Shown here: positions 85 to 17,450 of the stretch, one piece after another
Numbering within the stretch: the stretch's first letter is position 1
Layout of the letters: the number at the start of each line of letters is the position of its first letter
Source: Trichoplax adhaerens
Lineage: Eukaryota > Animalia > Placozoa
Length of the DNA: 17,450 bases
Reading direction: 5' to 3'
Assembly (NCBI RefSeq): GCF_000150275.1
Contig: NW_002061025.1
Location: 1 to 17,450 of the forward strand
The notes under the pieces: model-generated
Databases searched by the model: none
Told to the model about the DNA's origin: nothing
What the model saw: only the letters and a program-made list of their open reading frames with translations
Made by a program: the position numbers and the translations under genes

Positions 85-715
85 TTACAAATGTTTTCGT
101 TTTCTCTTCAAATCTCTCTTTCACTGCCATTTATAATTACAATCGAATTAACTCAACTATTGCATTCTCCCCATGGACGAATATGCAATGGTGTTTTGCA
201 TTATTTATTTTTGGGCATTGGTTTTACTGACATTAGGGGTATACTTTATCCATCTGTACAAAGCACACACCCATCATCTTGATTGATAGAGGTGATGTTA
301 ATTTAGTTTATTAATAGCTGAAGAGATCGCCATCTACAATATTACAAGACTGTCATCAATATCTACTTTAGACTAGATGGGATGCTTAATGATAGATAGG
401 CTGCAATTTTGCAATCCATTTTCTCCATCCCTATGTTGATCTTTATGTTCTCCTCCTATTTTACCAATGTTTTGTTACAGATGTTTTTCATTTTCTCTTT
501 CAAGTCGCTCTTTGACTACGATTTGTAATAGACATTAAACTAGCTCAGCAATTGCATTGACCATAGACTAGACATAGACTACTTTTAATTATGCTTTGGT
601 TTATTTATTTTTGGGTATTGGTTTTACTGACATTGGGGGTATACTTTATCCATCTGTACAGTATGCACATCAATCATCTTCATTGATTATGGAAGCAATA
701 TTAACTTAGTTTATT
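85..715. repeat. Diverged direct duplication, ~400-bp period (approx. 85-312 vs 475-715)
   Basis: 201-260 vs 601-660 match at 58/60 nt; the flanks align more loosely. Confidence 0.85.
710..715 (-). promoter_or_regulatory. Putative AATAAA polyadenylation signal of the NB-ARC gene
   Basis: AATAAA on the minus strand about 65 nt downstream of the stop. The context is AT-rich, so the motif is weakly diagnostic. Confidence 0.4.
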
Positions 716-778
716 GTCACTCTCGTTAAATTGCATTGGGTACAAGATACAAGATTAACTTTACATTTCATGCAAATA

Positions 779-1078
779 TCATGTCTTTTTCACGTGGGTT
801 ACTAAGCAGTAATCCTTTCTACTCCTGATGATGAGTTGAGAGTGTTGAAGATTCCATTGCATGTCCCATATCCGGAAGTGAGGGAATGGTAGAGTGATTT
901 GTAGCTGTAGTGTTTGGGGGTTATAAATATTCAAACTAGAGTATTTTTCATATAGGATTAACTGCTTGTCCGACCATAGATTTTCATGGTTGAAGAATTG
1001 TGTGAGAGGCTTGAAGTATTTGATATTGTCTTTGTATCTTTTCATGCGTAAATTTCCATCTTCTTCTTGGTTGAGTAT
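779..1078 (-). CDS. Exon 21, terminal (ILNQEE...IWDMQWN...VKKT*)
   Basis: cctatag| acceptor, open frame to TGA at 779-781; final propeller-like blade. Confidence 0.78.
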   Translation of the reverse strand: MLNQEEDGNLRMKRYKDNIKYFKPLTQFFNHENLWSDKQLILYEKYSSLNIYNPQTLQLQITLPFPHFRIWDMQWNLQHSQLIIRSRKDYCLVTHVKKT

Positions 1079-4000
1079 CTATAGGCATTGAATTTTATGA
1101 TTAGCACAACCTACGTTCAACAATGACGACGTCACATTGATTGTATCCAGTTATCGTTGTCTTACTGCTATATGGTCTCCATTTTCCAGTAGTAGCAAAA
1201 GTTCGTCATCTTTCTATAATGAATTGAATGGAATGTAACGATCAGCTATGGACTAGAGTAGAGTCATAATCAACATATTACAGTCGTTGTCATCCTCCTT
1301 CCAACTCATTTCCATATTGACACTGCGATCATTATGACTTACCATTACATAATCAATCATTTCGGCATCTTTCTCTCCCCATACATCAACTAATTTTTCT
1401 ATCTTCATCCGAAGAGGCGAATGTTTAATCTTATTCATCATTATTTTACACATTAATCCTTTATCCCATTGGTAGTCAATATTTTCCAGTAATTGATATT
1501 CACCATCCCCAAACTTGTAACACTACAATAAATTCAAGTTGGAAATGTCGTTAATGGTCGTCTCCATTTGCAATAGACGTCAAAGTCGACATTCAAGGCT
1601 ATTTTCGACATGAAACTGAACAGTCAATTTATAGACGGTTCCACTTTAGAATAGAGATTAAATGGAAATAAATTATTCTAGCTTACTTTCAAGCTACGTC
1701 TATCATCTTTGTTTCTTTCCCAAACATAAAGATAATCATCATCAACATACACAACACGAGCACCATGACTCAATGTCAGTCGATTAACGCTCTTCTTTCC
1801 GGTCGTAAGGTTAACAGTTATTATCCACTTTTCACCTACGTAGGATGTCTGAAATAAATCAAATAAATGAATCCTTCGACCAATTGACCTCCAACGTAAT
1901 TGTAAAATCAGTTCAACAACTTCTTATGTTAGCTAATAAGCATTCTCATTTTCATCATCTTCTAAATAATACTACCGTCATTTTCATACAAACTTCAAAC
2001 TGGTATTTTCAACATACGTTCATGAGAATGAGTGTGTTATCCTTCTTTCTATATCTGAAGCGTATTTCATCTTTAACAATCTTCAAGTGTCTTTCTCCAA
2101 GTCTTCCATTGATTAATTCCCTGTACTTTCTACAATCTTCTATACCTACAAACTCGATCAGCTGCAACCAATCAATATTATTCAATTCAATTCAATGGAG
2201 CAGAGGATTGAACAAAGTCGATAGAGCTACTAGTGCTGATGAAAGCTTAACCTACGTCGAATATGTTGACGGTAGTTTGGGGGTTACGTTGGGGTCTACC
2301 AACATCAACTGATTTTGTTTGAGAGATATCTTGCCAAGCAATTTTATCGCCTTAGTTTAATAAAAACGATTGTGACCATGAATGAATGCATGATTGAATT
2401 AGAGTTGTTGTACAACCATCATGTCTTACCTTGTAAATTATATTCATATACATCCCGTTTATCATAAATAAGCAATCGATGACTACCAGGAATAAACATT
2501 GATCGACCAGATTGATCAACTCTAGCACGAGATTGGACTTGATCACCACTCATTTTGAGTATGTGTTTCTACATATATCACAGTATTACGATATAGAACT
2601 AATATTACTGCACTATAAAATATTATGCTGATCTACTTTATGACGCATTATCAATATGAGTAACCCAATATTGCACTAACCCTAGTTATACATTCAATAG
2701 CGATCATTGACTGATGGCCTGATACCAAAATATTCTTAACGAATGTAATATCATGTAATATAATTCGAAATTGATTTTCGAATTCGAAAACTTGTTTCAT
2801 TTTTAACTGACCAATTGTACTACTAATATGTCTGGTATATGACAATATCATATAGGCTGCATCACGGTAGATGTTGATGTACGTTAAACGCTTGCTATGT
2901 TGAAAATCATTATTTTTAAAGTACTGACCATCATCCTTTGCATGGATGAAAGCAGGTACTTTGAATGATCGACGAGTCCATTTCTTTACATTCCACATCT
3001 ATCCATCAAATTGATACAAATAGCTTTTATCAATTGGATCTAAGAGACGATATTTGACTTGACTGCATTTAGTCAATTGTAGCTTACTTCAATTTGACAT
3101 TCATTAATCCAATTTTGCGGATCGACAGGTTCATAGTCTTTAGACTTCCCTCCTTGACTTCGATATTTTCTCCACCACAACAAGACACAAACACTATCTT
3201 GCATTAGTACCCATCCACAATATTCTATTTTGTATTGGCGTGATATTTGCTTATTTGTAGGTTTAATACAATTCCCCTCAATCTTCCAAATCTAATAATA
3301 CACAGCACAACAACAGTTGAACACAACAGTTTTCGATCACTTGGCATACTTAAATTAATATTCGCTTAAACTCATATTCACTGCTAACCCTAACTTCACG
3401 GGAATCTCCAGAGAGTGTCATGATCATTTTGGTTTCAGATTGAGGAGGGCAAAATTGTACGGAATCAAAGTCAGTCTTAACGTCTTCCCCTTGATCGTTT
3501 TGGGCAAAGCTTATTTCTTCATTTTTATCGAGATCGTAAACGATCCACTCGTCCTAAGAATATTCAACAAATGAATGAAAAATTAACTTGCCATCAACTC
3601 AATCCTACTCAAATTGCAATGTGCTACCTTTCTGCTGAATTGCTGGAAGGCTGCAGTCCGACCGTCAGCTGAGATTTCCACTTTTTCAATATCCATGTTT
3701 GGTGTTGATATTTGAAGCACAGTTTGTGATGTTTGATAATCTTGAATCTATTAAAGCAATTGCAATCGTGAGCAAGACATGAATTGACATGAATGACATG
3801 ATAGAGTAACGAGTAATCAGCATTGATTTTATTGGCAGTCTATGACTGATTGGATTGTATTTTCAGCACTAGTTCAACGATAGTCCATTCTAATTCTTGG
3901 CCTTTGCCGTTTTATGATTGTATACTAACATACCACAATTTGGCAGTCTCGTTTAAGATTGTTTTGAGTACCAATTATTCGCAAAGGTCCAAACTCGGGA

Positions 4001-7000
4001 TTCGAAACTGATATAGACTGATCCAATTCATTCTTACCGATTGCTTTGCATGCATCATAAGTATATGGAGTTGTTGCACTAGTTGAACACCTATTTGCAA
4101 GTCAGAATCGACAGTATAGTGTAAATTACAGTAGGTAGTACTGCTATGGATTGATGAAATTGGAAGTAGTTTACTTACCTTGACATGCTCCAATAACTTT
4201 CACCATTTCGCACATTTTCCTCAGCTAATTGCAAAGCTCGCTGTTTCATCCAACTATCTGACATGCTAAACCACAAGATCATTTGAACGACATTATTTTT
4301 GTGTACATCTAGCCAAGGTTGTTGCTGCTTGAGGAGCTGCTTGAGTTGATCGAAATCCTCCCAGTTCTGAATGTAAATTAACCATTAAAACGATATTAGT
4401 CGTATTTTGAAAGAAAGCGCTGGAATGACTAGCAGTCGATTTATAATTATAAAAATGAGTCGACGGCGTGATCATTTATTACGTTAATCAAAACATGATA
4501 AAATATGGACATTAGTAAAAGCGACTGTCCAACTACACTTTAAGCATGCAAATACTTATATAGTGATAAAAATGACGCAGCCCGATTTGTACAAAGTAGA
4601 TCGTCAGTTTGAAAACTGCAAATACCAATACCAGGTGGCGTAAGTAACTAGGATTTCTACATGTTATATCATTAATCACTACCTTGAACAATCTACACCA
4701 AAAAATGGATGATGGAATCATTTGTACAGTTGTTATTGATCCATGGTATACAGAGATGAAAGTAATCAATCTTTTCATTCTATTGAATTAACTACATCAA
4801 TTCAGTATCCAACCTTGTTTCTTTTCTTTAGATAGTCGACGTAGTCTGTTAAATCGCATTCTAGGTAATAGATCGTCCTGTCTATTTGAATTTTACGTGT
4901 CATCCAATCGAAATCGGTCATAATACTTTGAAGATGTTGATCATTTTCAGCTATTAAAGCATGATGAATAAGATTGGAATAGAAATAGCCATCATCAGGG
5001 AAGGTATTCCACTTTTCATGGCACTGCTTATGGTAACCATCGATCAACGTTTTGTGTGTATCCACTTGTTCGGACTTGGAGAGTCGTTTCTGTAGATAGT
5101 CGACCATCAAATCGTGTAGAACACAGTGCGATCTTGACAAAGTAAGGGAAATCAATGGGATTAATACTATTTACAGTGGTCAATGCAAGGCTATCGATTG
5201 TAGCACTGCATTGAGAATAATTATAACAATTATAACAATTATAGCGTATGTAAAACTATGGATTGAATAGCACTGGCTCGATTATTGAGAAGAACATATT
5301 GGATAGTCATTGCAGATGAATTGGATTACAGAATCAAATTACTTTAGACGATAGCAAATCATAATTTACTATCAAACTAAACAGTAGCTAATAGAAAAGA
5401 TTAATTAAATAAAAGTAGTTTTGGCTAGTTATCACTAAAAGAGAAAGAGAGCCTTATGGAAGAGGGTTAGAATTCAATTTACTGTGTAGGATATTGTGTG
5501 CAATGTGCAGTGTGTATACAAGGCTTGCTTTGTAGACATACATTCGTAGATCGCTTGAAGATGGAAGAGGAAAATAGTAAATGCCGATTGACTACGTTAG
5601 GTAAGACAATTTATACTTCACAATATAATATTTGCATTATTAATGATGGAAGTGAAAGCGTCACAATTCTAAATTTTACTAGTAACCTTAATATGGTGAT
5701 AATGTTGATTTAGTAGATAAAAAAGGAGACAAAACTAATAGCGCAATATTATCAACCTACATCTAACGATTGATAGATATTCTTATTCTGTACAGTATTT
5801 GCAGAATTAATATAGCAGCCTATGTATAGTCGTCAAAACATAGAATAGGCAATCATCGTAACTAGTATGACCTTTTTATAAATCGTGATACAACCCAAAT
5901 ATATTAACAAGTAGATAAAAAGTATTATGTTCTGTATCTTACAGATTGCATATATCCTAGCTTATTGCACTTGTATTCCAATAACTAAAATATATCTACA
6001 AGTTACACTCGTTCAATCTGTTCATTCCATACCTATAAGGCATTGCAAAATTACTCCATTAACTTAACTTGGGCATACAGTATTCTAACCAAAATTAACA
6101 TAAAGCAGATATATGATAGCTTATTCGACATGCAAGTACTGTACAGTCACAATCAATTTAAAATACTTATCAATCTGTTCATTCTATATCTATCACTATA
6201 TATGCCTACAAGGTAGGTCATGCTTTGAATATTAAAATATAAAGCATTGCAAAATTGTACATCACTCAATTAAGTTAACTTGGATATGCAGTATTCTACT
6301 CTACCCCAAAATTAAAAAATAATTAGTGTTCAAACATGATTGATGCTCTAAATGTATTGCAATTTACTTTGTGTTTATTTCAATACGTTCTACGAACCGA
6401 AATCTGATTAAACTTACTTTTCTTCATCATATGTAAGTAATGATTTGTTATGCATTTTCTTTACGAGAGGACGAGCTTCGATTACATCGTAGTTCCATAA
6501 CGATGCAACAGATTGAATAGGAATACTGACTCGCTTAAATACAGCTAGTTGCTCAAATAATTGTTTATTCTCATTTTCCAAAGAATCAACACTTAATTGT
6601 AAAGTCCCGTATAGATTGAAACCGTAATGAGCTAATTCAATATCTGCAGACTTTTTGGCAATGATACCCTTTGCTCGATTCCATTCTTTCTCAGTTTCTA
6701 AACCAAGACGGCCAATTATAGCGATAGCTAATGGTAAACCTTGACAACTGTCGATAACTTTCTCGACAACTGAACTTTTTAGCAATGTCCGAGCATTATC
6801 GTTAACGGCAAGTAACGCAAGCAGTTCTATAGCTTCCTTATACTCTAGTTTTTTCTATACAAGAGAGTATATGAAATAAGAATTGTATTTATCATAATTG
6901 TTCGGATAGGTTACTTAATGACAAAATAGAGAAATCATAGCGGTGAAGTTTACTTCAACTATAATACTATACTCCATGCCACTTTAATCAATACAGTTGG

Positions 7001-10000
7001 AAAAAAATATAAATTCATTTTTGACCTTTTATTGCATGAAATGAACAATATCGTCAGAGCAATTCAACTGTATTGACGCTTTTAACTATATTTTATCCAA
7101 CATAAATTTGAACATGTGTAATTTGAAAGAAGAATCATGCAAAGTGGATTGATTAATCAAGAGAACATCGACATCAATATTTGCCGATTCCAAATTATAC
7201 TGCAATATATAAGAAACTGAATTACAAAACTAACCGGTAAACGGATAAGACCATCGCCGCGCTCTTTTGCACGGTCCTCAAATCGTGAAGTACAGATTGA
7301 CTTCTTGGCAAAAGATAAGTATTTGTAATGATCCTTTTCCCAGATATCGTCAAAAATAAATAGCGTATCGGATAGTTTGCTATTTGCTGTTATAAGAATA
7401 ATCAAATAACTATTAATACTGTACCTTAAATATAATTCAAGTTGACATAGAATTGCTTATAAAAGGCTCAAAAATCACCTTCTAGGCTAGAACAGAGATA
7501 AGCACGAATTTCGCCGATAGATTGAATATTCTCTTTCCATTCCATATTAAGATCGATACCTATTCTCTTGAGTTTCTGGCATAACTCGGTATTAGATATA
7601 TTGCCTAAATTAAGATAAGTGTGAATCACCATCGCTGCTTTAACCAAAGCAGGGCAATTTAACGACCTTCGACAGCGCGTACATTTCAACAAAGTTAAGT
7701 TTAAAGGATCTAACAAATATGTATCTCTTTTCCCATCTTATTTTTACGTTTTAGAACATATTACTTTATTCGCTCCAGTAGATAAAGGGTTCGTTAATAA
7801 CATGATAACCCACTTATCGATAATCCCTAAAGATCTAACCCTAACAAAGTTATGGTTCGATTTCATATTATCTCTCGACGCAATATTGCCTAAAAATAGT
7901 ACACAATCATAATGCTTTCGACTACTGGTTAAATATGGCCAAATTTTTTAAAAGGGGAAAAATTCCACGGTGTCATGATTTTTAAATCAGGTTACAGTTA
8001 TTAATTTGAATAGGAATTTATAGTTGATTCTCATATACTAGAAAGTATACTTTACCGTACTATTAATTATAAATGGTCATCACTTTCAACGTCATTTAAT
8101 GCGGTAAGGCAGCTATTTTATTATATCGTGGTCTGTAATTACTTTTGCTACATTATTTTCGTAGAAAGAAATGCTCTTATAATTATAATTGAACTACGAG
8201 TTAAAGTTATCTTACTAGAAGCTCCATAAATATTGAAAAATTAAAAACTATGATCATTACATGGTAGCCTACTTGATGGTATTTACTCATAAAATAAGGT
8301 TTAACTTATTTATCTCTTGGCAATACTTTTATCGATTCCATAGGAACAATATTCTCATCTCGTACTTCTTATAATTCTTCTAATGATACTAGTAAATGCT
8401 TTCGGTCCGAAGTAGATAAGGAACAGGCGGGGTAAGCTTATGCTCTACTCCAAATTCGAATTGATCAATTTTACAGATACATTGTATGGATAATTGTACA
8501 GTAATAGTCGCCCAAATACATTACTTATTAATACTTGAAATATCATCTGTAAGACTTGCAGACTTACCGATTTTCATCCAGTAACAGCCATTTGATTTAA
8601 ATGAGCCCTTTTTAGTAGCTTGTCTAACAGACTGGCAAACAGTTGTTGTTTTACCACTACCAGCCATACCATGTATTAAAATTTTACCGTTAGACTTGTC
8701 TATTTCCTGTAATTGAGTACAAATTTGGTCTACAATTTTCTTCCTTATAACGTAGTGACTCTCTGGAGTTGGAGGAAGCTGTCGAAGAGGAATTTCTAAT
8801 TGTGGAATGAATTATGTATAATGGAGGCTTTAATAAATTGGAAAGGACATGTCACAATTGCCTTTCGTCTTTAGCGTTGAGCAAGAACGATTATTTTCGC
8901 ATTATAAATGAAACTCATAGTAAATGTTTATGAAATTAACGGTACAATAACTGGCATATTCTAAACTTGCACAGGATAAACACGACTAGTAAAACTCAAC
9001 AAATAATATCCTTAATCTAATAGCAAGAGCGTTTGAACGTCTAATGAATTTCTAAAGTGATTTTTGATATAAAAAAACAGGTTTTATCGCAGATTTAAAG
9101 AGCTGTCACTCACGCAAATAAAATTGAATATTGCGCGACACTGATGATGAATTAAAAGAATAAACCCATATTAATCTGTTCAGGAAATACGCTTACGTTA
9201 AATAAGTGAAAACATAACTAGGTGTACTTAAGTCTTATGTGTTGGAAGGTAGATGTTCTTACAAAATTCTTTCATTGAACTACAATCTATAACTTTTTAG
9301 CAGTAAATCATTTCAAGAATTTTAAATATTGTATAAAATTGACATACTATGTTAAAATCACAATTCTATATTAAACAAGGAAACCCTCGGGTCGATCAAT
9401 TAATTGGGTAGTATTTTATATCAGTTTTACGTATTTAGACTAGCACAGTAACAGATACGATTAATATTATTCGCTATCAGTAGACGTCGTCGTATACAGG
9501 TAAAATATCTTACGAAGACAACAGCAGATCTTAGAAATAACAGACTAACTCATTTATTTACGTGCGTTAAACAAGTACAAATACAACTAGGTATATCTTC
9601 GTCCTATGTGTTGGAAGGCAGAAGTTGTTACTTCATTCTTTCAGATATTAACTACAATCTCTCATTGTTAAATTAATCATGGAAGTAATTTCAAGTTTTG
9701 AATAAAATCGATATTCTATGTTAAAATTACAGCCCTGTAATAAATAAGGAAACTATCGGATTGATCAATTCATTGGATAGTAATCTACCTCAGTTTGAAT
9801 GCAGTCTGCCTACATCCATCATCTCTTTTTAATTTAAGCGTCGNNNNNNNNNNNNNNNNNNNNNNNNNNNNNNNNNNNNNNNNNNNNNNNNNNNNNNNNN
9901 NNNNNNNNNNNNNNNNNNNNNNNNNNNNNNNNNNNNNNNNNNNNNNNNNNNNNNNNNNNNNNNNNNNNNNNNNNNNNNNNNNNNNNNNNNNNNNNNNNNN

Positions 10001-13000
10001 NNNNNNNNNNNNNNNNNNNNNNNNNNNNNNNNNNNNNNNNNNNNNNNNNNNNNNNNNNNNNNNNNNNNNNNNNNNNNNNNNNNNNNNNNNNNNNNNNNNN
10101 ACTAATTAATCATTGGAAGAATTACAAATACTTCAGTCTTTTATCCAAGGTACATAATTNTGAGTCTCTCGAAGAATACCCTAATTCAGTTTGAAAGTAA
10201 ACTCTTACGAATGAAAATGAACAATTTCTATATGAGAGTGTGGAAGATCGAAAGATGAAAGGTACTGAATTTGCTTAATGAGAAAGAATTACATGAAGAA
10301 ATCGATCGCGTCAAGAAATCTTTCGATCAAGGGATTCCCAAAATAGGTGTTGAGATAGAAAGTAAATTGAAAAGTAATCATGATCAAATAATAGAAGACT
10401 GTAGTAATGAATGAATTATTGCATCATCAATGATATAATTTTGTTGAGTAATGAATTCTATGTTAACACCTAGCCATTAATTAACTACTATTCAATGTTA
10501 AAGAAAGTGTGTTGTGATTCTTGCTATATTCAGTAGGTGGACTTGGCTATAAATGGATGATTGTTTAGCACCAACGAAGTTGGTGAGGCTCTATAAAAGC
10601 CTGAAAGTTCTTGATTGAGGGAGTTGATAAGTTAGTCGATAATAGATGGTTATCAGTTGTTAGTAGTCGATTCTAAGTTGTGAGTTCCATTGGTCATTTT
10701 AATCAATAGCTTTTAGAATAAAGTTTTGGTTCTTAACGTGAGTATTCTATCGTCTAAGACTCGAATCTAAGTTTGGTAGATTAAAGAGTGCTTAGAGTTC
10801 GTTGCTCCGATAGTTAAGACTACATTAAAGGAAAGAATCCCGTTCAATTTTGTCCAGTAAGCTCGGTTGTGACATCATTGGTGGCAGCGATGGGATTCAC
10901 CCAACACTATTAGCTAGTGCCGAAGTGAACGAAGAAGACAACTTTTTGTATTGAGTACGCGTACACACACACTAGGATAAAGTTATTTTACACTTAACTA
11001 GAAGAAACCTGCGAATACTGTCATAAACAATTTCAATCCATTGAAGCAAATTACCGTAGCTGCGGTGATTTAAGAAAAGAAATACATACTGTACTGTACT
11101 AGAGTTTATAGTAACATTAGTAACATCCCTTACGATACTAATTGCAACAGACTAAAATCACAGATGGTAATTACTGAACAAAACTATCGCTGGCATTACT
11201 GAGATCATGGTAGCATACCAGTAGAATCATTATTTTGATTCTGATTACATATAAAATTGAATGCATCAATTTTACCTTTCCTTTTACCTTGAGAGGTCGC
11301 TGCAGCTATTGCCTCTGAGCTTCCCTTTTCATCAATTTTATTAATTATATTTTCTTCCATTTTGCCCAATCGATTTTCCATCCGTTCAACTCGGCTATCC
11401 GTCCTTTCAGTTGTACCTTCTATCCGTTCAGTTCGGCATCAATCCTTTCAGTTGTACCTTCTATCCGTGTCAGTTCGGCTATCTATCCTTTCAGTTTTGC
11501 CGTCGATTCTATCAGTTCTGTCATCAATCCTTTCAGTTGTATCTTCTATCCGTTCAGTTCGGCCATCTATCCTTTCAGTTCTGTCGTCAATCCTTTCAGT
11601 TGTACCTTCTATCCGTTCAGTTCGGCTATCTATACTTTCTAAACGACATATCACTTTGTCATATTGTTCAGCAAAACGATCCAATAGTGAATTATTTTTT
11701 TCCGTAATGTCTTTTATCAACTGCGTTAATTTCTTTATGTCGTCAATGCTGTTATTAATATCGGAGACATTATTTAAAGTTTCTAAAATTTTTTCAATGT
11801 TAGCTTGGACTGGTTTCATAACATCGTCATTTAAACTTTGTACGTCTTCCTTTATTCTATCAAGCATCGTTACTATCAATGACTTTTCGTCTACTAAGAC
11901 CTCGTTTAATATATTTTGAGCATAGTGTTTTAGATCTTCAACATTTTCAACTTTGCCCAATTGGGTCTGATATTTGAAGTTTTTTTCAATAGCAGATGAA
12001 TCCAAAAGCTCGTAAGATTCTTTATTGATTGAGCCAGAGCCCTCAAGGAATGATTTTTGGCGGAAGCCATATTCACAAATGTCGCTTTTTTCCCCCTTCA
12101 ATTTGTAGTACTTTACTGTGTTGTCCTCGACAGTCCTAATGCCAATATTTTTAAATAACTTGGAGGTTTTGATCTTTTTCTCTCCATTTTCTGCTAAAAC
12201 TTTTAATTCACTTCCAGTACCTTTTGACCTACGATACGAATATTGCATATGTTCATTTTGTGTTCAGCAAATTCTTAATCCATTATAGAAATGTGAAGAG
12301 AACGACATTCTAGACCACTAAGTCCATTTTTATAGCGAATGCTACCCAACATGAAGCAAAGTACTCTACAAAACTACGTATATTAATGCAAGATGTTATA
12401 TTCACAAATGTAGATTAAATTGCATAATCATAAGTTACAAGACAGCTGATAGCAGCTGATAGGTTATAAAAGCCTGCGCATGTTGATAATATAATAAATT
12501 ACCCATCACCATTAAAAGACCGTGGATGGAAAATGCTTTACTCATATTTGCATGTAAGTATACAAGGGACCTTGCAGATATTCAATCAGCTATATTCCGG
12601 TTACATTTAGCGATTAATATATTTTAATTCTAAATAAAAAGTATTTCTAATTTTCATGAATTAGGTTACCAATCATTTCTTATAGGATTACCGAGGCAAT
12701 TCAACTAATAAAAACGTATCTCGCAGTATTAGGCCCAGCTAATTTTAAAATCAATAGTGCTGAAACTTAGGGTAAATGGTTTAATTAATGATGCACCACT
12801 GTACGAGTTTATATCCGAACTTTATACCACTTGAAAATTAAGATATTCCATCAAAGCAATACCGTAAGTAAACTGATATATGCCCCTGAGTGATGGAAAA
12901 ATTGTTATGTAAACCGGAAATTTGGACAAGAGGGTAAAAACAGATTATCCTTGCTTTAGTGCTATATCGTACACCTTTCAATTGGCATAAAGTTTGGAAT

Positions 13001-14090
13001 ATATGCAGACTCTAACAGATGTGCATCAGTGTTTAAGCTATTTCCAGTAAATATCAAAGTTGGCGGCAGTAATACTGGCTAAGTTTAATGATCCTTTACA
13101 ATGCCATCATGGCAACTATGCTCTTGAACGATGTGTTAAGCGACGAGGGTTACATAAGGGTTAAGCAAGCACTCACAGCGGGACTACAGTACGCTTGACA
13201 TAGTGACGATAAGAACTCCATTGCCTTTTTTTATAGTAACTAATGTGAATCAAAAACATTCCCTTACTAGATTACTCACTACTAAAATAATGTTAGAAAA
13301 GTTCATATTGAGAGTAATAAGCAAAGATAATCCAAGTCAAACATGTACGAAAATTTAAAATAGATATCGTGCAGAGTTTCTACGACATGAATTTAGAAAT
13401 TCAAACCGCCTTGTTGCGTAAATAATTAGTGAAACACTTGGAAAGAAAATCTGTTCATACATACAGGCAGGAATCCCTGTTTTTCTTGCTAAAACCAGGG
13501 CAGGCAATACTTTTGATAGCAAACTTAGCTCGATCAACTGGCTTTGACTTTTCGTTCACGAAGGCTTCAATAATAGCATCAGTCATGTCATTAGCAAATT
13601 TTTTAATATAATGATAATCGATTTCATCGGAGATATAATGTATTTGTTGTTCAAACATGAACAAGATTTCCAAAGCCATCATTGAGATTGCCAATGTGGT
13701 ATCGTCATTATCGGGTGCTATTTTGTCAATAAGTTCTTTCAATTTCTCTCTCTTGCATTTTTGGAGATACCATACAATACCTTCGCCCAACAACTGTATT
13801 ATGCTGTTTACAATAGCAGAACATCTAAAAACGCTTGATACTACGCCTGTGACTGCCGTTGCTGTATCTGAAGCCGCGCTCCCCAAGAAATTGAATGCAA
13901 CTTTCACACCTTTTCCTGTTTTGCCTAGTGGTGCACTCTCTTCGTTTTCTACAACTTTGGAGGCAATTTCCAGTTTTGCAATGAATTTGAGTATAAAGTG
14001 CTTCAGAAATTGTTTGAATTTCAAACCATCGCTATTGTTAGGATCATCCAATTCTTTTGGCCAATTGCTTATAGTTTGTTGGCTTGCCAT
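779..14090 (-). CDS. Apaf-1-like NB-ARC (AP-ATPase/STAND) protein with non-CARD N-terminal helical domain + coiled coil and C-terminal divergent WD40-like propeller region; 21-exon model, ~1707 aa
   Basis: Manual splicing with GT-AG junctions and compatible phases: 14090-13465, 13239-13177, 12228-11276, 8795-8568, 7604-7479, 7386-7235, 6854-6418, 5132-4814, 4366-4179, 4090-3934, 3747-3628, 3553-3389, 3291-3088, 2998-2681, 2568-2430, 2350-2256, 2161-2018, 1848-1687, 1522-1343, 1213-1166, 1078-779 (sum 5124 nt). NB-ARC motifs occur in canonical order. Caveats: compensating indels with a stop in exon 3, and intron 3 spans the N gap. Confidence 0.75.
1166..1213 (-). CDS. Exon 20 (KDDELLLLLENGDHIA)
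   Basis: cattatag| ... |gtaaga, 16 codons, phase 0-0. Confidence 0.62.
1343..1522 (-). CDS. Exon 19 (CYKFGD...IDYVM)
   Basis: tattgtag| ... |gtaagt, 60 codons; overlaps track ORF 1253-1453. Confidence 0.72.
1687..1848 (-). CDS. Exon 18 (TSYVGEKW...YLYVWE...SLK)
   Basis: tatttcag| ... |gtaagc, 54 codons. Confidence 0.75.
2018..2161 (-). CDS. Exon 17 (LIEFVG...LILMN)
   Basis: gttgcag| ... |gtatgt, 48 codons. Confidence 0.72.
2256..2350 (-). CDS. Exon 16 (DKIAWQ...TVNIFD)
   Basis: aactaag| ... |gtaggt, phase 1-0, open frame. Confidence 0.65.
2430..2568 (-). CDS. Exon 15 (KHILKM...FIPGSHRLLIY...YEYNLQ)
   Basis: atatgtag| ... |gtaaga, open frame. Confidence 0.75.
2681..2998 (-). CDS. Exon 14 (MWNVKK...ECITR)
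   Basis: ggatag| ... |gttagt, 106 codons; QIE|MWNV is a WD-like junction; matches track ORF 2651-2998. Confidence 0.78.
3088..3291 (-). CDS. Exon 13 (IWKIEG...CQIE)
   Basis: ttattag| ... |gtaagc, 68 codons; the EVR|IWKI junction forms a WD-like strand. Confidence 0.78.
3389..3553 (-). CDS. Exon 12: WD40-like blade (WIVYDL...VQFCP...LSGDSREVR)
   Basis: ttcttag| ... |gttagc (alternative donor at 3395), open frame. Confidence 0.75.
3628..3747 (-). CDS. Exon 11: WD40-like blade (IQDYQT...VEISADGRTAAF)
   Basis: ttaatag| ... |gtagca, 40 codons; the ISADGR turn is typical of propeller blades. Confidence 0.75.
3934..4090 (-). CDS. Exon 10: start of putative beta-propeller region
   Basis: caaatag| ... 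|gtatgt, open frame, phase 2-0. Confidence 0.75.
4179..4366 (-). CDS. Exon 9: end of HD2 (NWEDFDQLKQLL...NVVQMIL...ALQLAEE)
   Basis: Open frame between acattcag| and |gtaagt; resembles the Apaf-1 HD2 'NIVQLGL' helix region. Confidence 0.85.
4814..5132 (-). CDS. Exon 8: WHD end (LHDL, MHD-type motif) and HD2
   Basis: CVLHDLMVDYL...DDGYFYSNLIHH...TDFDWMTRKI, Apaf-1-like; acceptor tgtcaag|, donor |gttgga. Confidence 0.93.
6014..6315. repeat. Diverged intronic tandem duplication (approx. 6014-6098 vs 6171-6315)
   Basis: Shared ordered blocks caatctgttcattc, gcattgcaaaatt, ttaacttgg, cagtattcta, ccaaaattaa. Confidence 0.7.
6418..6854 (-). CDS. Exon 7: HD1 with CQGLPLA motif and winged-helix domain
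   Basis: GLPL motif, LSVDSL, LAVF, SLW, KSLL; acceptor ttgtatag|, donor |gtaagt. Confidence 0.95.
7235..7386 (-). CDS. Exon 6: Walker B (LFIFDDIW) and sensor-1 (SICTSR)
   Basis: Resembles the Apaf-1 LLILDDVW and ILLTTR motifs; acceptor ataacag|, donor |gttagt. Confidence 0.93.
7479..7604 (-). CDS. Exon 5: NB-ARC (GNISNTELCQKLKRIG...AYLCSSLE)
   Basis: Acceptor aatttag|, donor |gtgatt, phase 1-1; part of track ORF 7468-7716. Confidence 0.85.
8568..8795 (-). CDS. Exon 4: NB-ARC start with Walker A / P-loop (ILIHGMAGSGKTT)
   Basis: Not in the ORF track (no start codon). Translation EIPLRQLPPTPESHYVIRKKIVDQICTQLQEIDKSNGKILIHGMAGSGKTTTVCQSVRQ...CYWMKIG; Apaf-1 has HGMAGCGKS. Acceptor caattag|, donor |gtaagt. 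Confidence 0.93.
9216..9796. repeat. Diverged intronic direct duplication, 369-bp offset (approx. 9216-9427 vs 9585-9796)
   Basis: Shared blocks aactagg, tatgtgttggaagg, attctttca, aactacaatct, ctatgttaaaat, aaggaaac, gatcaatt, tcagttt. Confidence 0.8.
9844..10100. other. Assembly gap (N run)
   Basis: Run of n; a further single n at 10160. Confidence 0.99.
11276..12228 (-). CDS. Exon 3: end of N-terminal domain + long coiled coil with heptad tandem repeats (frame interrupted 11437-11469)
   Basis: Acceptor tatcgtag| at 12228 (phase 2); 266-aa track ORF. The same frame resumes after the indels (RVERMENRLGKMEENIINKIDEKGSSEAIAAATSQ). Phase-1 donors at 11288 or 11276. Confidence 0.75.
11382..11633 (-). 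repeat. Coding minisatellite, 12 x 21 bp, consensus peptide I[DE]xxTER
   Basis: Plus-strand units such as tcctttcagttgtaccttcta and tccgttcagttcggctatcta; 252 bp = 12 units. Confidence 0.92.
13177..13239 (-). CDS. Exon 2 (63 nt, YYKKRQWSSYRHYVKRTVVPL)
   Basis: Acceptor cacattag|, donor |gtgagt, open frame; phase 2-2 joins exons 1 and 3 in frame. Confidence 0.65.
13465..14090 (-). CDS. Exon 1: N-terminal helical domain of unknown family (MASQQTISNW...KKNRDSCL)
   Basis: Long ORF (211-aa track ORF) with donor CT|GTATGT at 13465/13464 (phase 2). An AG lies 2 nt upstream of the ATG, so an upstream exon is likely. Confidence 0.8.
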
Positions 14091-14700
14091 TTCTATTGAG
14101 CAGGAATTGACACGCAGGTTCTCTTATGCACCCACTTCTATAGAAAGTCAATAATACAAATTTGAAGCAACATGCAAATGAAAGCTAAAAATGCAGTTAA
14201 ACTGAAGATAATTAATTTGTTGAGTAAAACACTTATAAATGTAATAGTAACTTTTAACTAGATAGTTTGATATTAATAAGTCGATGAATTTTCGCTAGCT
14301 TGATAATTATATTGTTACATAGTACTTTGAAATGCAAGCCAAAAGAGTTAATGTCAATAGATCACAACATTAAGCGTCCAAGCATAATCTAACAAGTATA
14401 ATTTCATAACGAATCATATGGGATATTTCTCTACTGCTTATTATCGATAAAACAATTTGAAAATCTTAGACTACTCACACTAATCCGCTTCATATTTTTG
14501 TTGTGGACTACACCCTGAACTCACGACTCGCTCGCTATTCTACTCAAATCAGCTGATTGAAGTTATACAGCTATATGTATCATCAGGGACTACTGGAAAA
14601 CTTTTCAGTTATTCCTGTTAATTAATACTGTACTCAAAATGGATACAGAACAACCTATCATAGTGTAGAACTTGCTATATATATGTTATGTTTAAGACGA

Positions 14701-15801
14701 TGAGTTTGCAATCTAATTTATTACGCTAACACATTAGCTCCAATTTTTGATGTCATCACGCTTCCGTCAAGCAAATTTTTGGCATAAAAATAAGCAGAAT
14801 ACTGTTCCGTCTAGGATAAATAATTTTCGACGATTTTAGATACGTAGTAAAGAAATCGTGATGTTTAAGATGATAAGTTTACAATCTAATCTGTCATAAA
14901 TAAGATCGATTTGTGAGTAATTCTAAATTCGAAATCACTGCATTTGCTTCGTGTCAGACCCACACTACTAAAAATTAAGTGGAGTATGATATTTGAATTT
15001 TAGGATAGTGGGTAGAAGAATATAGATTAGGTTATTGCAGTTGGATCGTCTGCCAAAGTAACAAAATATGTATTTATAACTGGAAATAATCGCAGTCAAC
15101 TCACCTCCCAAGTTCAAGCCTTATTCTCTAGAAGTAAATCTCTTAATAAACGATAAACCTATCTGCGAATTAAGAAAACACTAATTTGCAAAAATCTAGA
15201 GTATAATCGTGTTAACTATGTAGTCCTTTTTATTATCATACGCGTACACGTATCATTTATTATCCATCAATCTAATCTAAATGAAGCAATTTCCGGTTTG
15301 TGAAGTGAAACGCTTTAGCCATATGTTTACTCACATTTAGTACGTATATTTAACTCGTACAATGTAATTAACCATAAGCAGATTTATTTCTTCATTTATC
15401 CCCATTTATTTCCTAAAGAGATGATGTAAGTCAACGAGAATATAGGTACCTATCCATGTGCTTACAACTTTACGAAATGATACTAATCCTATTCGCTAAA
15501 ACTGATGGACTATACTGTACAGTATAAACTCCTAATGATTCTTTATAAACCGTTAAAAGTAAATTGTCTGTAAGCTATTTAAGACCAAAGAAATAAAATA
15601 TCAGCAAGAACAAGTAATTTTTATCTCTGTGTTTCAGATAGTGAGTTCGCAATCTAGTTTATTGACGCTAACACATTAGCTCCATTTTTGGATGTCTTTA
15701 CGCTTGTTTTAAGTACACTTTTGGCATGAAAATAAGTAGAGCGCTATTCTATCTAGGATAGATGATTTACGATGATTGTAGATACGTAGTGAAGAAATAG
15801 T
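14701..15801. repeat. Dispersed direct repeat ~160 bp (approx. 14701-14859 and 15642-15801)
   Basis: Shared acgctaacacattagctcca, tttggcat, tctaggata, tagatacgtagt, aagaaat in the same order. Confidence 0.85.
15105..15158 (-). other. Possible 5' UTR exon of the NB-ARC gene
   Basis: gcagatag| acceptor and strong GAG|gtgagt donor; could splice to the acceptor 2 nt upstream of the ATG at 14090. No transcript evidence. Confidence 0.3.
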
Positions 15802-16459
15802 AGGCTTTAAAACAAAAATCTTGCGATACGTACGTTCAATTTTATAAATTTAATACTGTATCAAAATAAAATAAATCACAAGCTCAGGTTAAAATCTGGA
15901 ACAGGGATTATCGAGTAATGTTAAGTTAAGAATGGAATTAAAGGCGTCAAGCTTATGATAAACACGTGGCATATAAAAATAAAATACATGGGAGGAAATA
16001 TAGAGAATTTGAGATGAACACTTTTTAAATTAGTTTTGAACGATAATGTCTATCCGTACCAGTTCACTCCTGCTTGATTTATTGGGATAGACTGGATACA
16101 ACGTTTAATGAGTATTTCACAGTTCTTGAATCTTGATGCTCAAGCTGACAGTTTAATGGAGCTGATGAAGAAAAAGTAATTAACGAATTTGTCTGTCAAA
16201 AAGGCGGAAAGAGTGAGATAGGAAGGGAAAGTAGAAAACGCATTTATTCGACTGTCATGCGATCACATTATTGACTTTGAGTTCATTAATAAATGAATAA
16301 TGTAACAGCACCGCTTGCAAAGAAAGAAATAACAATAAACTGTTCTTAACTTCTTAATTGGATGTTGAATTTGAGCTATTATCATGCAAATGAAATTAGA
16401 ATTCAGGAACGGTAGATTGACAATAGTTTTAGAGCTTACCAAAGTTTTAATAACATTAA

Positions 16460-17320
16460 CATTTATTGGTACTGCTAAAGTCAAAGAAGTGATGATATAT
16501 GGTTTCCAATGTATCTTGGTCCCTTCAAAGGTTTCAATAGAGGAACAGTATATAGTAGGTCATCATCATTAATTGTAATTCAGCTCGTTTAAGAACTTGT
16601 TATTCCAGTCAGTAAGCATATTTTATAGGTCAATTTGTATTATGACTTAGTTCGAACAGTGTACATAATAGTAATAATACGAGATTCAGTACTATCATTT
16701 AACTGATCGCAGGTAACATTTTGCAAGTCTAGATAAACTGCACTCGCCTACGACGGTAATAGAGCAGCTGTGTTGTCAATTCTGCCGAACCCTTCGTTGG
16801 CTATCTCATATTTCATAAGTCCATGGAGTACTTTCATATAGTTCCATTTTGATATAGGTATTCTTTGCGAAAGCATAGCTTGTACCGCATGAGCAGTTGT
16901 ATACACATTCTCGAATTGATAAGTTGTTTTGGATTGCTTTAAGAGTAAAGCTTGGAAGCCTTTAGATATAGCACTATTACTACTGTTATCGGCACAATTT
17001 AGGGCTAAAATTGTCATTGCTGTTGTATCTAAATCAACCCAAGTTCCATCTGATGATTGCATTACTTGTAATTTATAGACTAGATTCGATTTATATTTGC
17101 TGTTTGTCAATCAAATATGGAGTACATCACTTCTACCCATATAAAGTTATTTTCCTGGGTAATATTGTATAGGAGTACCTGTTGATTCTTAACAGGCCAA
17201 TCGATCGACCTAACACAGCGATTTGCTTGAACTATTATAATTCTTGATGTTTAAACTAGCAAGAAAACTGTGAAATGGAATACAAAAAATAATATTAAGG
17301 CGAGAATCTTTGTCTTAAAG
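16460..17320 (-). pseudogene. Decayed cobalamin-binding protein (transcobalamin / gastric intrinsic factor family-like)
   Basis: Motifs DTTAMTILALNC, FENVYTTAHAVQAM, KWN, GFGRIDNTAALLPS*ASAVYLDLQNVTC resemble the family alpha-domain (intrinsic factor ILPSLKGKTYLDVPQVTC). These are followed by IITIMYTV and, in other frames, QVLKRAE and FEGTKIHWKPYIITSL, resembling the beta-domain. In-frame stops at 16748-16750 and 16640-16642, plus frameshifts. Boundaries are approximate. Confidence 0.72.
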
Positions 17321-17450
17321 GCAGATGAGTAGAAAAGAGTGAAAGGCGAAAAATAACTGTGTCTTCTCGTCTGTTATATCATCATTAATATACGGTACCT
17401 ATTGACCTGGTACTGTTTGAATAATTAATTTATAGTTACCACGCTCATTA

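Follow-up and report, generated by a model that had tools for sequence, protein, structure and literature searches.

A helical head module next to an Apaf-1-type ATPase in Trichoplax adhaerens, a candidate effector of death-fold and STAND hubs in a poorly assembled tandem array

We have analyzed a stretch of 17,450 nucleotides in the assembly of the placozoan Trichoplax adhaerens (C1332:1-17450, hereafter called the window; the assembly has 105.63 Mb in 1,414 contigs and C-numbers are contig labels), with a GC content of ~33%. Its minus strand carries alike the exons of a head module, namely a helical head domain followed by a small beta domain and a coiled-coil stalk (unit 1, 14090 to ~11219), and the exons of an Apaf-1-type ATPase (unit 2, 8795-782). 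The two halves of the window sit on different contigs of one scaffold, with a gap between them. A first-pass annotation had read both units as one gene, in which the module would replace the caspase recruitment domain (CARD) of Apaf-1. The explanation that we favor, with a probability of about one half for the whole of it, is that the locus contains two units of a recently amplified and badly assembled tandem array, that the head module serves as an effector downstream of hubs formed by death-fold proteins or by signal transduction ATPases with numerous domains (STAND), and that the gap hides a linker mini-exon and probably also a CARD exon.

The sequences of other loci indicate that the head module does stand in the place of the CARD in some Apaf-1-type paralogs. 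A profile of nine paralogous head domains, compared with 1.84 billion representative sequences, retrieved 37 representative proteins having the head domain. The head is N-terminal and NB-ARC follows from about residue 470-480 in TRIADDRAFT_62454 (1675 aa; contig C1363), TRIADDRAFT_61449 (C1392) and RDD38720.1 of Trichoplax sp. H2 (1608 aa, named Apaf-1), and from residue 534 in TRIADDRAFT_62115 (C1381). In TRIADDRAFT_62454 the head spans residues 1-200, NB-ARC 482-706 and APAF1_C 814-941; the latter family is also matched by RDD38720.1. Neither a CARD nor a death domain is found by Pfam in these four proteins, and no CARD was detected at the loci. Since the C1392 locus is without any N in 28 kb, and presents head, coiled coil, P-loop, GLPLAI and HD2 in this order over 7 kb, its fusion is free of assembly doubt. 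The search for paralogs joining the same N-terminal domain to NB-ARC, which the first-pass annotation had proposed, was thus successful at three loci and in the H2 protein; the CARD-less fusion claimed for the window holds at the level of the family, in these other loci, but appears unlikely for the window itself. (The head-bearing models P0005 and P0012 of C1381 have a P-loop, GIGGCGN, without the lysine of the GK[ST] motif, either because part of an exon is skipped in the models or because Walker A is degenerate.)

The same head is also found with a coiled coil and a C-terminal death domain, in TRIADDRAFT_61448 and RDD36911.1 of strain H2 (P0038 at 6e-11; P0004), and a spider head gene has TPR exons downstream. 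We found no published description of the module. The available catalogue of placozoan NB-ARC proteins reports 39 genes in Trichoplax sp. H2, with CARD, death-like domain or death domain as effectors and several left unassigned (Kamm et al. 2019; PMC6321704). Within this placozoan expansion of Apaf-1, some paralogs carry at the CARD position a module of 460 aa that neither the catalogue nor Pfam names.

The copy of the module in the window shows the complete signature of the family, which we define here from alignments: a FLxxFIxKF helix, a hairpin, RKxxKKI, a LAIxxxAxxIxRMYEQQI helix, the beta domain with GYRxxS and the coiled coil. Exon 1, with the conserved motif LAISMMALEILFMFEQQI, matches eleven places in the genome and has 38-40% identity to TRIADDRAFT_59578 and TRIADDRAFT_61449; it finds no match in Pfam (scanned exon by exon throughout the window) and none by sequence in the PDB. 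Exon 2 retrieves weak Pfam matches of coiled-coil type and nothing better, and may end at phase-1 donors at 11288, 11276 or 11219. The splice between the two exons (CT/GTATGT...CGTAG/G, slashes marking exon boundaries) is also that of the public model TRIADDRAFT_62502 (P0047), which maps here at 100% and presents the module as a separate gene of 468 aa. This model ends early because it reaches the first of two stops produced by indels. The twin of exon 2 at C1382:30105-31160, 99% identical, is open for 352 aa, and compared with it the window is shifted twice, by an indel of +1 near 11471 and one of -1 near 11436, with in-frame stops at 11450-11448 and 11441-11439 as the outcome; both 1-nt indels fall inside an array of 21-nt repeats. 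Three upstream exons encoding ~547 aa had been proposed previously. A module of ~545 aa without match in Pfam, PDB or fold searches is confirmed, but the presumed exons 2 and 3 are a single exon, the 12- or 38-nt "intron" between them being rejected for the paired indels seen against the open C1382 twin.

The AlphaFold2 (AF2) model of exon 1 alone is poor, with a predicted local distance difference test score (pLDDT) of 55.9, and the fold searches were therefore run with the model of the paralog TRIADDRAFT_59578, built from a 34-row alignment. This model has pLDDT values of 82-97 over residues 10-200, lower at the hairpin 60-90, and consists of six or seven helices, a small beta domain at 235-315 and long helices up to residue 489. 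With it, Foldseek found nothing in the PDB below an E value of 0.4, and a wide VIA fold search gave generic or membrane helical bundles with a best Z of 8.3, which is below the meaningful level for helical proteins. The head was said to lack a recognisable death fold, and this is sustained by the absence of such a fold from the Pfam matches of the window, from PDB matches by sequence or profile and from the top Foldseek and VIA rows of the paralog model. Similarity of the head to the bundles of plant CC/RPW8, fungal HeLo/HELL or MLKL proteins was equally absent from Pfam, and no fold match to them was meaningful. A search of the ESM Atlas with exon 1 returned weak and mixed matches (best 0.90, a potyvirus P3 cluster, recognition 1421), which we took as noise.

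The hairpin is rich in small residues and poor in charge: at ~residues 52-112 of the window protein, glycine, alanine, serine and threonine make up 0.41 of the residues vs. 0.19 elsewhere, and charged residues 0.11 vs. 0.31. The best hydropathy over 19 residues is 1.59 in the window and 1.75-1.88, i.e. in the transmembrane range, in P0031, P0032 and P0037, which have glycine zippers. Only one polar position of the head, Q149, is nearly invariant, and hence an enzymatic function is unlikely.

Unit 2 has the features that define Apaf-1-type AP-ATPases, namely Walker A, Walker B, NB-ARC above the Pfam cut-off and the HD2 of the APAF1_C family (the cut-offs are 23.5 bits for NB-ARC PF00931, 22.8 for APAF1_C, 27 for both winged-helix families and 23.9 for CARD). 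The exons from the P-loop exon to that running from 5132 onward are linked by GT/AG sites with matching phases. The winged helix of the GLPLAI exon scores 22.2 bits with Dark_WHD (1.9e-4) and 19.4 bits with the APAF-1-like WHD (1.2e-3), below the cut-off since two exons share the domain. With this qualification, the Apaf-1 core recognised by the first-pass annotation is real: P-loop, Walker B, GLPLAI, NB-ARC and HD2 are all present. (A 23-nt intron between the frames at 7479/7455 was considered and dropped for the acceptor at 7387, after a splice-site scan and inspection by eye.) When three full-length head-bearing paralogs are combined in a profile, mammalian Apaf-1 is matched from the nucleotide-binding domain to HD2 (residues 119-540) at 3e-42 and its WD40 part is left unmatched; plant ADR1 (1e-10) and CED-4 (5e-7) are matched far more poorly. 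A word-based homolog search with the NB-ARC region of TRIADDRAFT_62454, whose filter is too coarse for this family, returned the protein itself and a single CARD paralog. The P-loop exon has no usable ATG, there being no methionine ahead of the P-loop, and opens in phase 1; consequently, it requires an upstream exon.

The tail of unit 2 is conserved in the paralog at C1382:1-3082 with 63-91% identity. It had been called propeller-like, a claim for which we found no basis beyond a beta-rich appearance by eye: ten frames gave no WD40 or propeller family of Pfam at E values up to 1, except Beta_propel at 0.097, and the paralog profile found no WD40 chain in the PDB below an E of 0.85. The last exon (~99 aa, LWSDKQLILYEKYSSLNIYNPQTLQLQITLP) has no Pfam match and ends both NB-ARC-type and Roc-COR-type genes; copies lie at 782-1078 (-) of the window, C1382:492-788, C1382:36993-37271 and C1372:97721-98092.

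Table 1. Positions and strands of the features annotated in the window
Feature	Position	Strand	Description
Exon 1 of head module	13465..14090	-	Helical head domain, ~208 aa; ATG at 14090 is first in the open frame; donor CT/GTATGT, phase 2
Exon 2 of head module	11219..12228	-	Small beta domain with EYGFRQKS (GYRxxS in the family), then coiled-coil stalk
Tandem array	11376..11639	-	21-nt (7-aa) units, ~11 copies of TERIDxR heptad, within exon 2; Tandem Repeats Finder
Dispersed repeat, ~470 bp	10400..10880		More than 30 copies, 83-89% identity, on many contigs including large scaffolds
Antisense relic of another head-module paralog	10114..10354	+	Frameshifted, abuts the gap; TRIADDRAFT_62454 residues 315-394, tblastn 56-59%
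Assembly gap	9844..10100		257 N written; at least 1.15 kb missing by paralog comparison
Intron upstream of P-loop exon (segment A)	8812..9843	-	At least six other contigs carry it, with 95-97% identity
P-loop exon	8568..8795	-	GMAGSGKTT; Pfam NB-ARC 2.4e-7, 30.7 bits; acceptor TTAG/AA phase 1, donor TCG/GTAAGT phase 1
NB-ARC exon, P-loop to Walker B	7479..7604 (boundaries approximate)	-	Conserved in C1382, 72% identity
Walker B exon	~7235..7386	-	LFIFDDIW, then CTSR; acceptor inferred by eye
GLPLAI (HD1) and winged-helix start exon	6418..6854	-	NB-ARC 9.4e-8, 32.0 bits; splice sites matched
Winged-helix end (HDLMVDYL) and HD2 exon	4805..5132 (3' boundary approximate)	-	APAF1_C 1.3e-9, 38.6 bits (frame 5170-4805)
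Tail	782..4384	-	~9 or more exon-like open frames, beta-rich by eye; last exon 1078-782, stop 781-779

What separates the two units is larger than the gap written in the assembly. The left flank, which ends at 9843, recurs with 95-97% identity in C1361, C1321, C1006, C1372 (122 kb) and C1007, where it runs on for 441 bp and is followed by a segment B of ~790 bp, which duplicates in tandem, with 80% identity, the intron (segment A) together with the initial 36 nt of the P-loop exon. The 441-bp piece holds a conserved mini-exon of 31 codons, (E)NRISSTSSTEPVKSTLSDNTTPMQTAPMNT, with acceptor CTAG/AA and donor ACAG/GTATAA, both phase 1. On the other side, positions 10101-17448 of the window are 98.6-99.4% identical to C1382:29000-35606, and ahead of this twin lie 157 bp and then a B that is cut short; 709 bp there are absent from the window. 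Because the flanks of the paralogs carry this additional sequence, those of the window must be discontinuous, with at least 1.15 kb missing and at least one probable exon hidden; by comparison with the paralogs, this is most likely the linker mini-exon. The phases on both sides, which had been considered compatible, are indeed phase 1 for all the candidate donors of exon 2 and for the acceptor of the P-loop exon; they do not discriminate, however, since the mini-exon and the CARD exons of paralogs have the same phase.

Two further elements of the right flank, the antisense relic of another head-module paralog and the dispersed repeat, lie inside the putative intron. On C1382 the relic extends further, to residue 250, and the public model of the twin (TRIADDRAFT_62074, P0046) has its last exon inside the dispersed repeat, at the window equivalent of 10820-10770. 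Upstream of unit 1, at 16751-17110 (-), lies a gene fragment with an exon-like frame of the eukaryotic cobalamin-binding family PF01122 (1.2e-8), a copy of which is present on C1382:33443-35606 with 98.6% identity.

The position that the CARD occupies in paralogs corresponds to a place in or beyond the gap of the window. The closest relative of the left contig, C1321 (97%), has upstream of B an intact CARD exon (MVVSRAIKG..., with its own ATG; 27.2 bits), and in C1031 the stretch from B to the CARD is without any N. Searches with the CARD of C1321 detected such exons at a distance of 0.8-2 kb upstream from the P-loop exon of C1375, C1298, four copies on C1385, C1394, C1411 and C1414; this set covers every NB-ARC paralog close to the window. 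Head modules too are followed by a CARD. C1007, which has no N in 86-5295, shows in succession a coiled-coil exon, the mini-exon, B, 441 bp, a 322-bp fragment of the end of A and a two-exon CARD with phase-1 acceptor, own ATG and phase-1 donor; the JGI model TRIADDRAFT_62776 joins this coiled coil to the CARD. In C1372, gap-free at this place, 1.9 kb separate the head module from a CARD exon, behind which come a Roc/COR-A exon and then a copy of the window's last exon. The distance from module to CARD exon is about 2-2.7 kb downstream in these two gap-free cases. (The unit in C1372:86001-106000, region 8046-12092, directly downstream of its head module, has a CARD-ROCO architecture, in which the CARD exon precedes a 704-codon exon with Roc at 1.9e-10 and COR-A at 1.3e-10; its last exon is 81% identical to that of the NB-ARC gene of the window.) The paralogous sequence that can be placed at the gap itself (441 bp, B and 157 bp) contains the mini-exon alone and no CARD exon, so that a hidden CARD would be located at a greater distance, like that of C1007.

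A CARD is thus probably present at this locus, in or beyond the gap, either in the second of two genes or in one tripartite gene. The first-pass annotation had named a separate head gene and a CARD exon in the gap as the situation that would contradict its fusion, and the paralogs come close to this situation without proving it. A direct join of the head module to the NB-ARC body in one gene without CARD, probably via the mini-exon, appears to us unlikely; in that case recent exon shuffling would have produced here a counterpart of TRIADDRAFT_61449 and TRIADDRAFT_62454. This possibility draws on the common strand and order of the two units, on the phase 1 of donors and acceptor and on the startless P-loop exon, as well as on the small gap estimate, the very existence of the scaffold and the precedents in the family. 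Moreover, given that a truncated B precedes the twin of the right flank and that in five paralogs B and then 441 bp lead to the left flank of the window, a join of ~1.15 kb without CARD is possible, and the antisense relic and the truncated B resemble the scar of a rearrangement that could have deleted the CARD. Against it stand the intact CARD of the 97% identical C1321 and of all near NB-ARC paralogs, the CARD lying between the module and what follows in C1007 and C1372, the broken frame of the module in the window, and C1382, where the sequence joined to the right-flank twin resembles a 3' flank and not NB-ARC exons.

A misjoin or otherwise dead locus is a very unlikely account of the gap. 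More broadly, the juxtaposition of the units might be an assembly artefact or a decaying locus, in which repeats of 95-97% identity have brought together a head pseudogene and some unrelated NB-ARC gene of the array. The right contig is in fact 99% identical to C1382:29000-35606, where the left neighbor differs, and the left contig ends in a segment with six or more near-identical copies; the duplicated pairs (A with B, and the 441-bp segment with that to the right of B) form a structure prone to collapse by the assembler, the window copy has two frameshifts and many small scaffolds of the same family are unplaced. We consider this account rather improbable, since in C1007 the order of module, B, 441 bp and A end is contiguous without N, which argues that modules and NB-ARC-type sequence are truly neighbors in the array, and since the frameshifts sit in the 21-nt repeats and may be read errors. 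The array is nevertheless unreadable from the present assembly, in which public gene models of this region are cut short by frameshifts, repeats and gaps.

If the gap does contain a CARD exon besides the mini-exon, as our best explanation has it, three products would be possible in frame, namely head-coiled coil-CARD(-NB-ARC), head-coiled coil-NB-ARC and CARD-NB-ARC from its own ATG, because every exon involved is of phase 1-1. (The last exon of the head module, the mini-exon, the CARD exons, the Roc exon and the P-loop exon all have phase 1 at their boundaries, a uniform set whose members could be shuffled or alternatively spliced in frame.) There would then be two routes by which a hub gathers copies of the head. 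In C1392, C1363 and C1381 the head is fused directly to an NB-ARC, which would oligomerise; alternatively, a C-terminal death-fold adaptor, which could be a death domain (TRIADDRAFT_61448, RDD36911.1) or a CARD (TRIADDRAFT_62776 and probably the present locus), would dock onto a platform bearing CARD or death domain, for instance a neighboring Apaf-1-like protein. Clustering would activate the head, possibly by insertion of the hairpin into a membrane. An effector activated by clustering fits the fixed N-terminal position of the head, its stalk and the alternation between fusion to the ATPase and a death-fold docking domain.

The main rival to this effector reading is that the head is a homotypic adaptor, wired like the PYD and CARD of ASC, or else a sensor of the trigger, and not an executioner. 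We regard this as doubtful, although its partners do vary among death domain, CARD and NB-ARC, an enzyme is unlikely given Q149 as the single nearly invariant polar residue, the hydrophobicity of the hairpin is modest in many members and proteins of intracellular symbionts carry the head beside an Ulp1-type protease, where it could mimic a host interaction domain. On the contrary, the head occupies the N-terminus throughout, ahead of a coiled coil, and this is where effector domains sit in plant, fungal and bacterial STAND proteins; the glycine-zipper hairpins of its distant members resemble membrane segments, and neither a death-fold-like nor another adaptor-like fold was found. A bolder version of the effector reading would see in the head a new membrane-acting executioner of animal cell death, triggered by proximity in an Apaf-1-type ring or by docking via CARD or death domain, and exchanged with obligate intracellular bacteria of Rickettsiella type, where NB-ARC/NACHT proteins bear it; this we put forward tentatively.

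Several observations weigh against our best explanation or parts of it. No CARD is found in the sequenced letters of the window, either by Pfam or by tblastn with four paralogous CARDs, and a gap estimated at 257 bp agrees better with the loss of a short piece than with that of 3-5 kb. The exon joins are throughout gene predictions or phase arguments. With its two frameshifts, the head-module copy of the window may be a pseudogene or contain sequencing errors, and the copy of C1007 has an in-frame TAG. As to membrane activity, the hairpin is weakly hydrophobic in several Trichoplax paralogs (hydropathy 0.3-1.3), and homology to membrane proteins or pore formers amounts to the weak hints of LeoBC (4e-4), AhlC (Z 6.3) and HBL-B (E 1.7), with nothing more.

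Distant homologs of the head lie next to STAND genes in Rickettsiella-type bacteria and in metagenomic contigs. A protein of a Rickettsiella metagenome-assembled genome combines an Ulp1 protease with the head, and an open reading frame (ORF) with NB-ARC and DUF7779 begins 55 bp downstream; in two further contigs the head ORF (P0037, P0036) overlaps an NB-ARC ORF, and that of P0031 overlaps a NACHT ORF. Directly upstream of NB-ARC plus DUF7779 or of NACHT ORFs, and in two cases with an Ulp1 of clan CE, these homologs recall bacterial STAND defence systems of the Avs/bNACHT type, from which they differ in that the head has no significant match in PADLOC. The matches to LeoBC in that search (4e-4 to 8e-4) are probably due to glycine-zipper composition, and one of the NB-ARC neighbors weakly matches Avs4 and mad8 (~1e-3). 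Modular Ulp1/OTU proteins with Apaf-1-like regions have been described in obligate intracellular bacteria, together with NB-ARC proteins of the Wolbachia WO prophage (Gillespie et al. 2018; PMC6133264).

In the Rickettsiella genome (JAVHYG010000034.1, 6001-10505), the Ulp1-like protease with head is followed on the same strand by NB-ARC and long unannotated ORFs, and likewise in a second contig (884-7865); the ORFs are separated by short gaps or overlap, and may be single giant genes split by frameshifts. A Ku/LigD cluster adjoins the Ulp1-head ORFs of JAVHYG010000034.1.

Animal proteins of the Apaf-1 type are thought to signal via recruitment of caspases by their CARD, and plants, fungi and bacteria are known to have NB-ARC proteins with helical executioner heads, the N-terminus of their STAND proteins being the position of the effector domain. 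The locus described here shares with Apaf-1, Dark and CED-4 the NB-ARC, the winged helix (below cut-off) and the HD2 of APAF1_C, but in its sequenced part there is no CARD and its tail has no detectable WD40. With plant CC-NLRs and RPW8-NLRs, fungal HeLo/HELL NLRs and MLKL it has in common a helical bundle, a coiled-coil stalk and NB-ARC in the same order. Like the effectors of plant and fungal NLRs, the head is interchangeable at the N-terminus of STAND proteins and, like HeLo of HET-S, the Trichoplax head is also found off the ATPase, on proteins with a recruitment domain. Unlike CC, RPW8, HeLo and MLKL bundles, to which it has neither sequence nor fold match, the head is larger, with six or seven helices in ~190 aa, and a beta domain comes after it. 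The forms with head, coiled coil and either death domain or CARD are reminiscent of adaptors of the ASC type, as they hold one death fold and could dock on CARD or death domain platforms encoded nearby, but in them the head falls outside the death folds and is separated from the other domain by a long coiled coil.

A module that replaces the CARD, rides on adaptors with CARD or death domain and recurs near bacterial STAND ATPases would be a new class of effector. If this is true, animal machines of the apoptosome type would be linked to caspase-independent outputs; and should the membrane-executioner reading also be true, a logic like that of resistosomes and MLKL would operate inside the metazoan apoptosome family.

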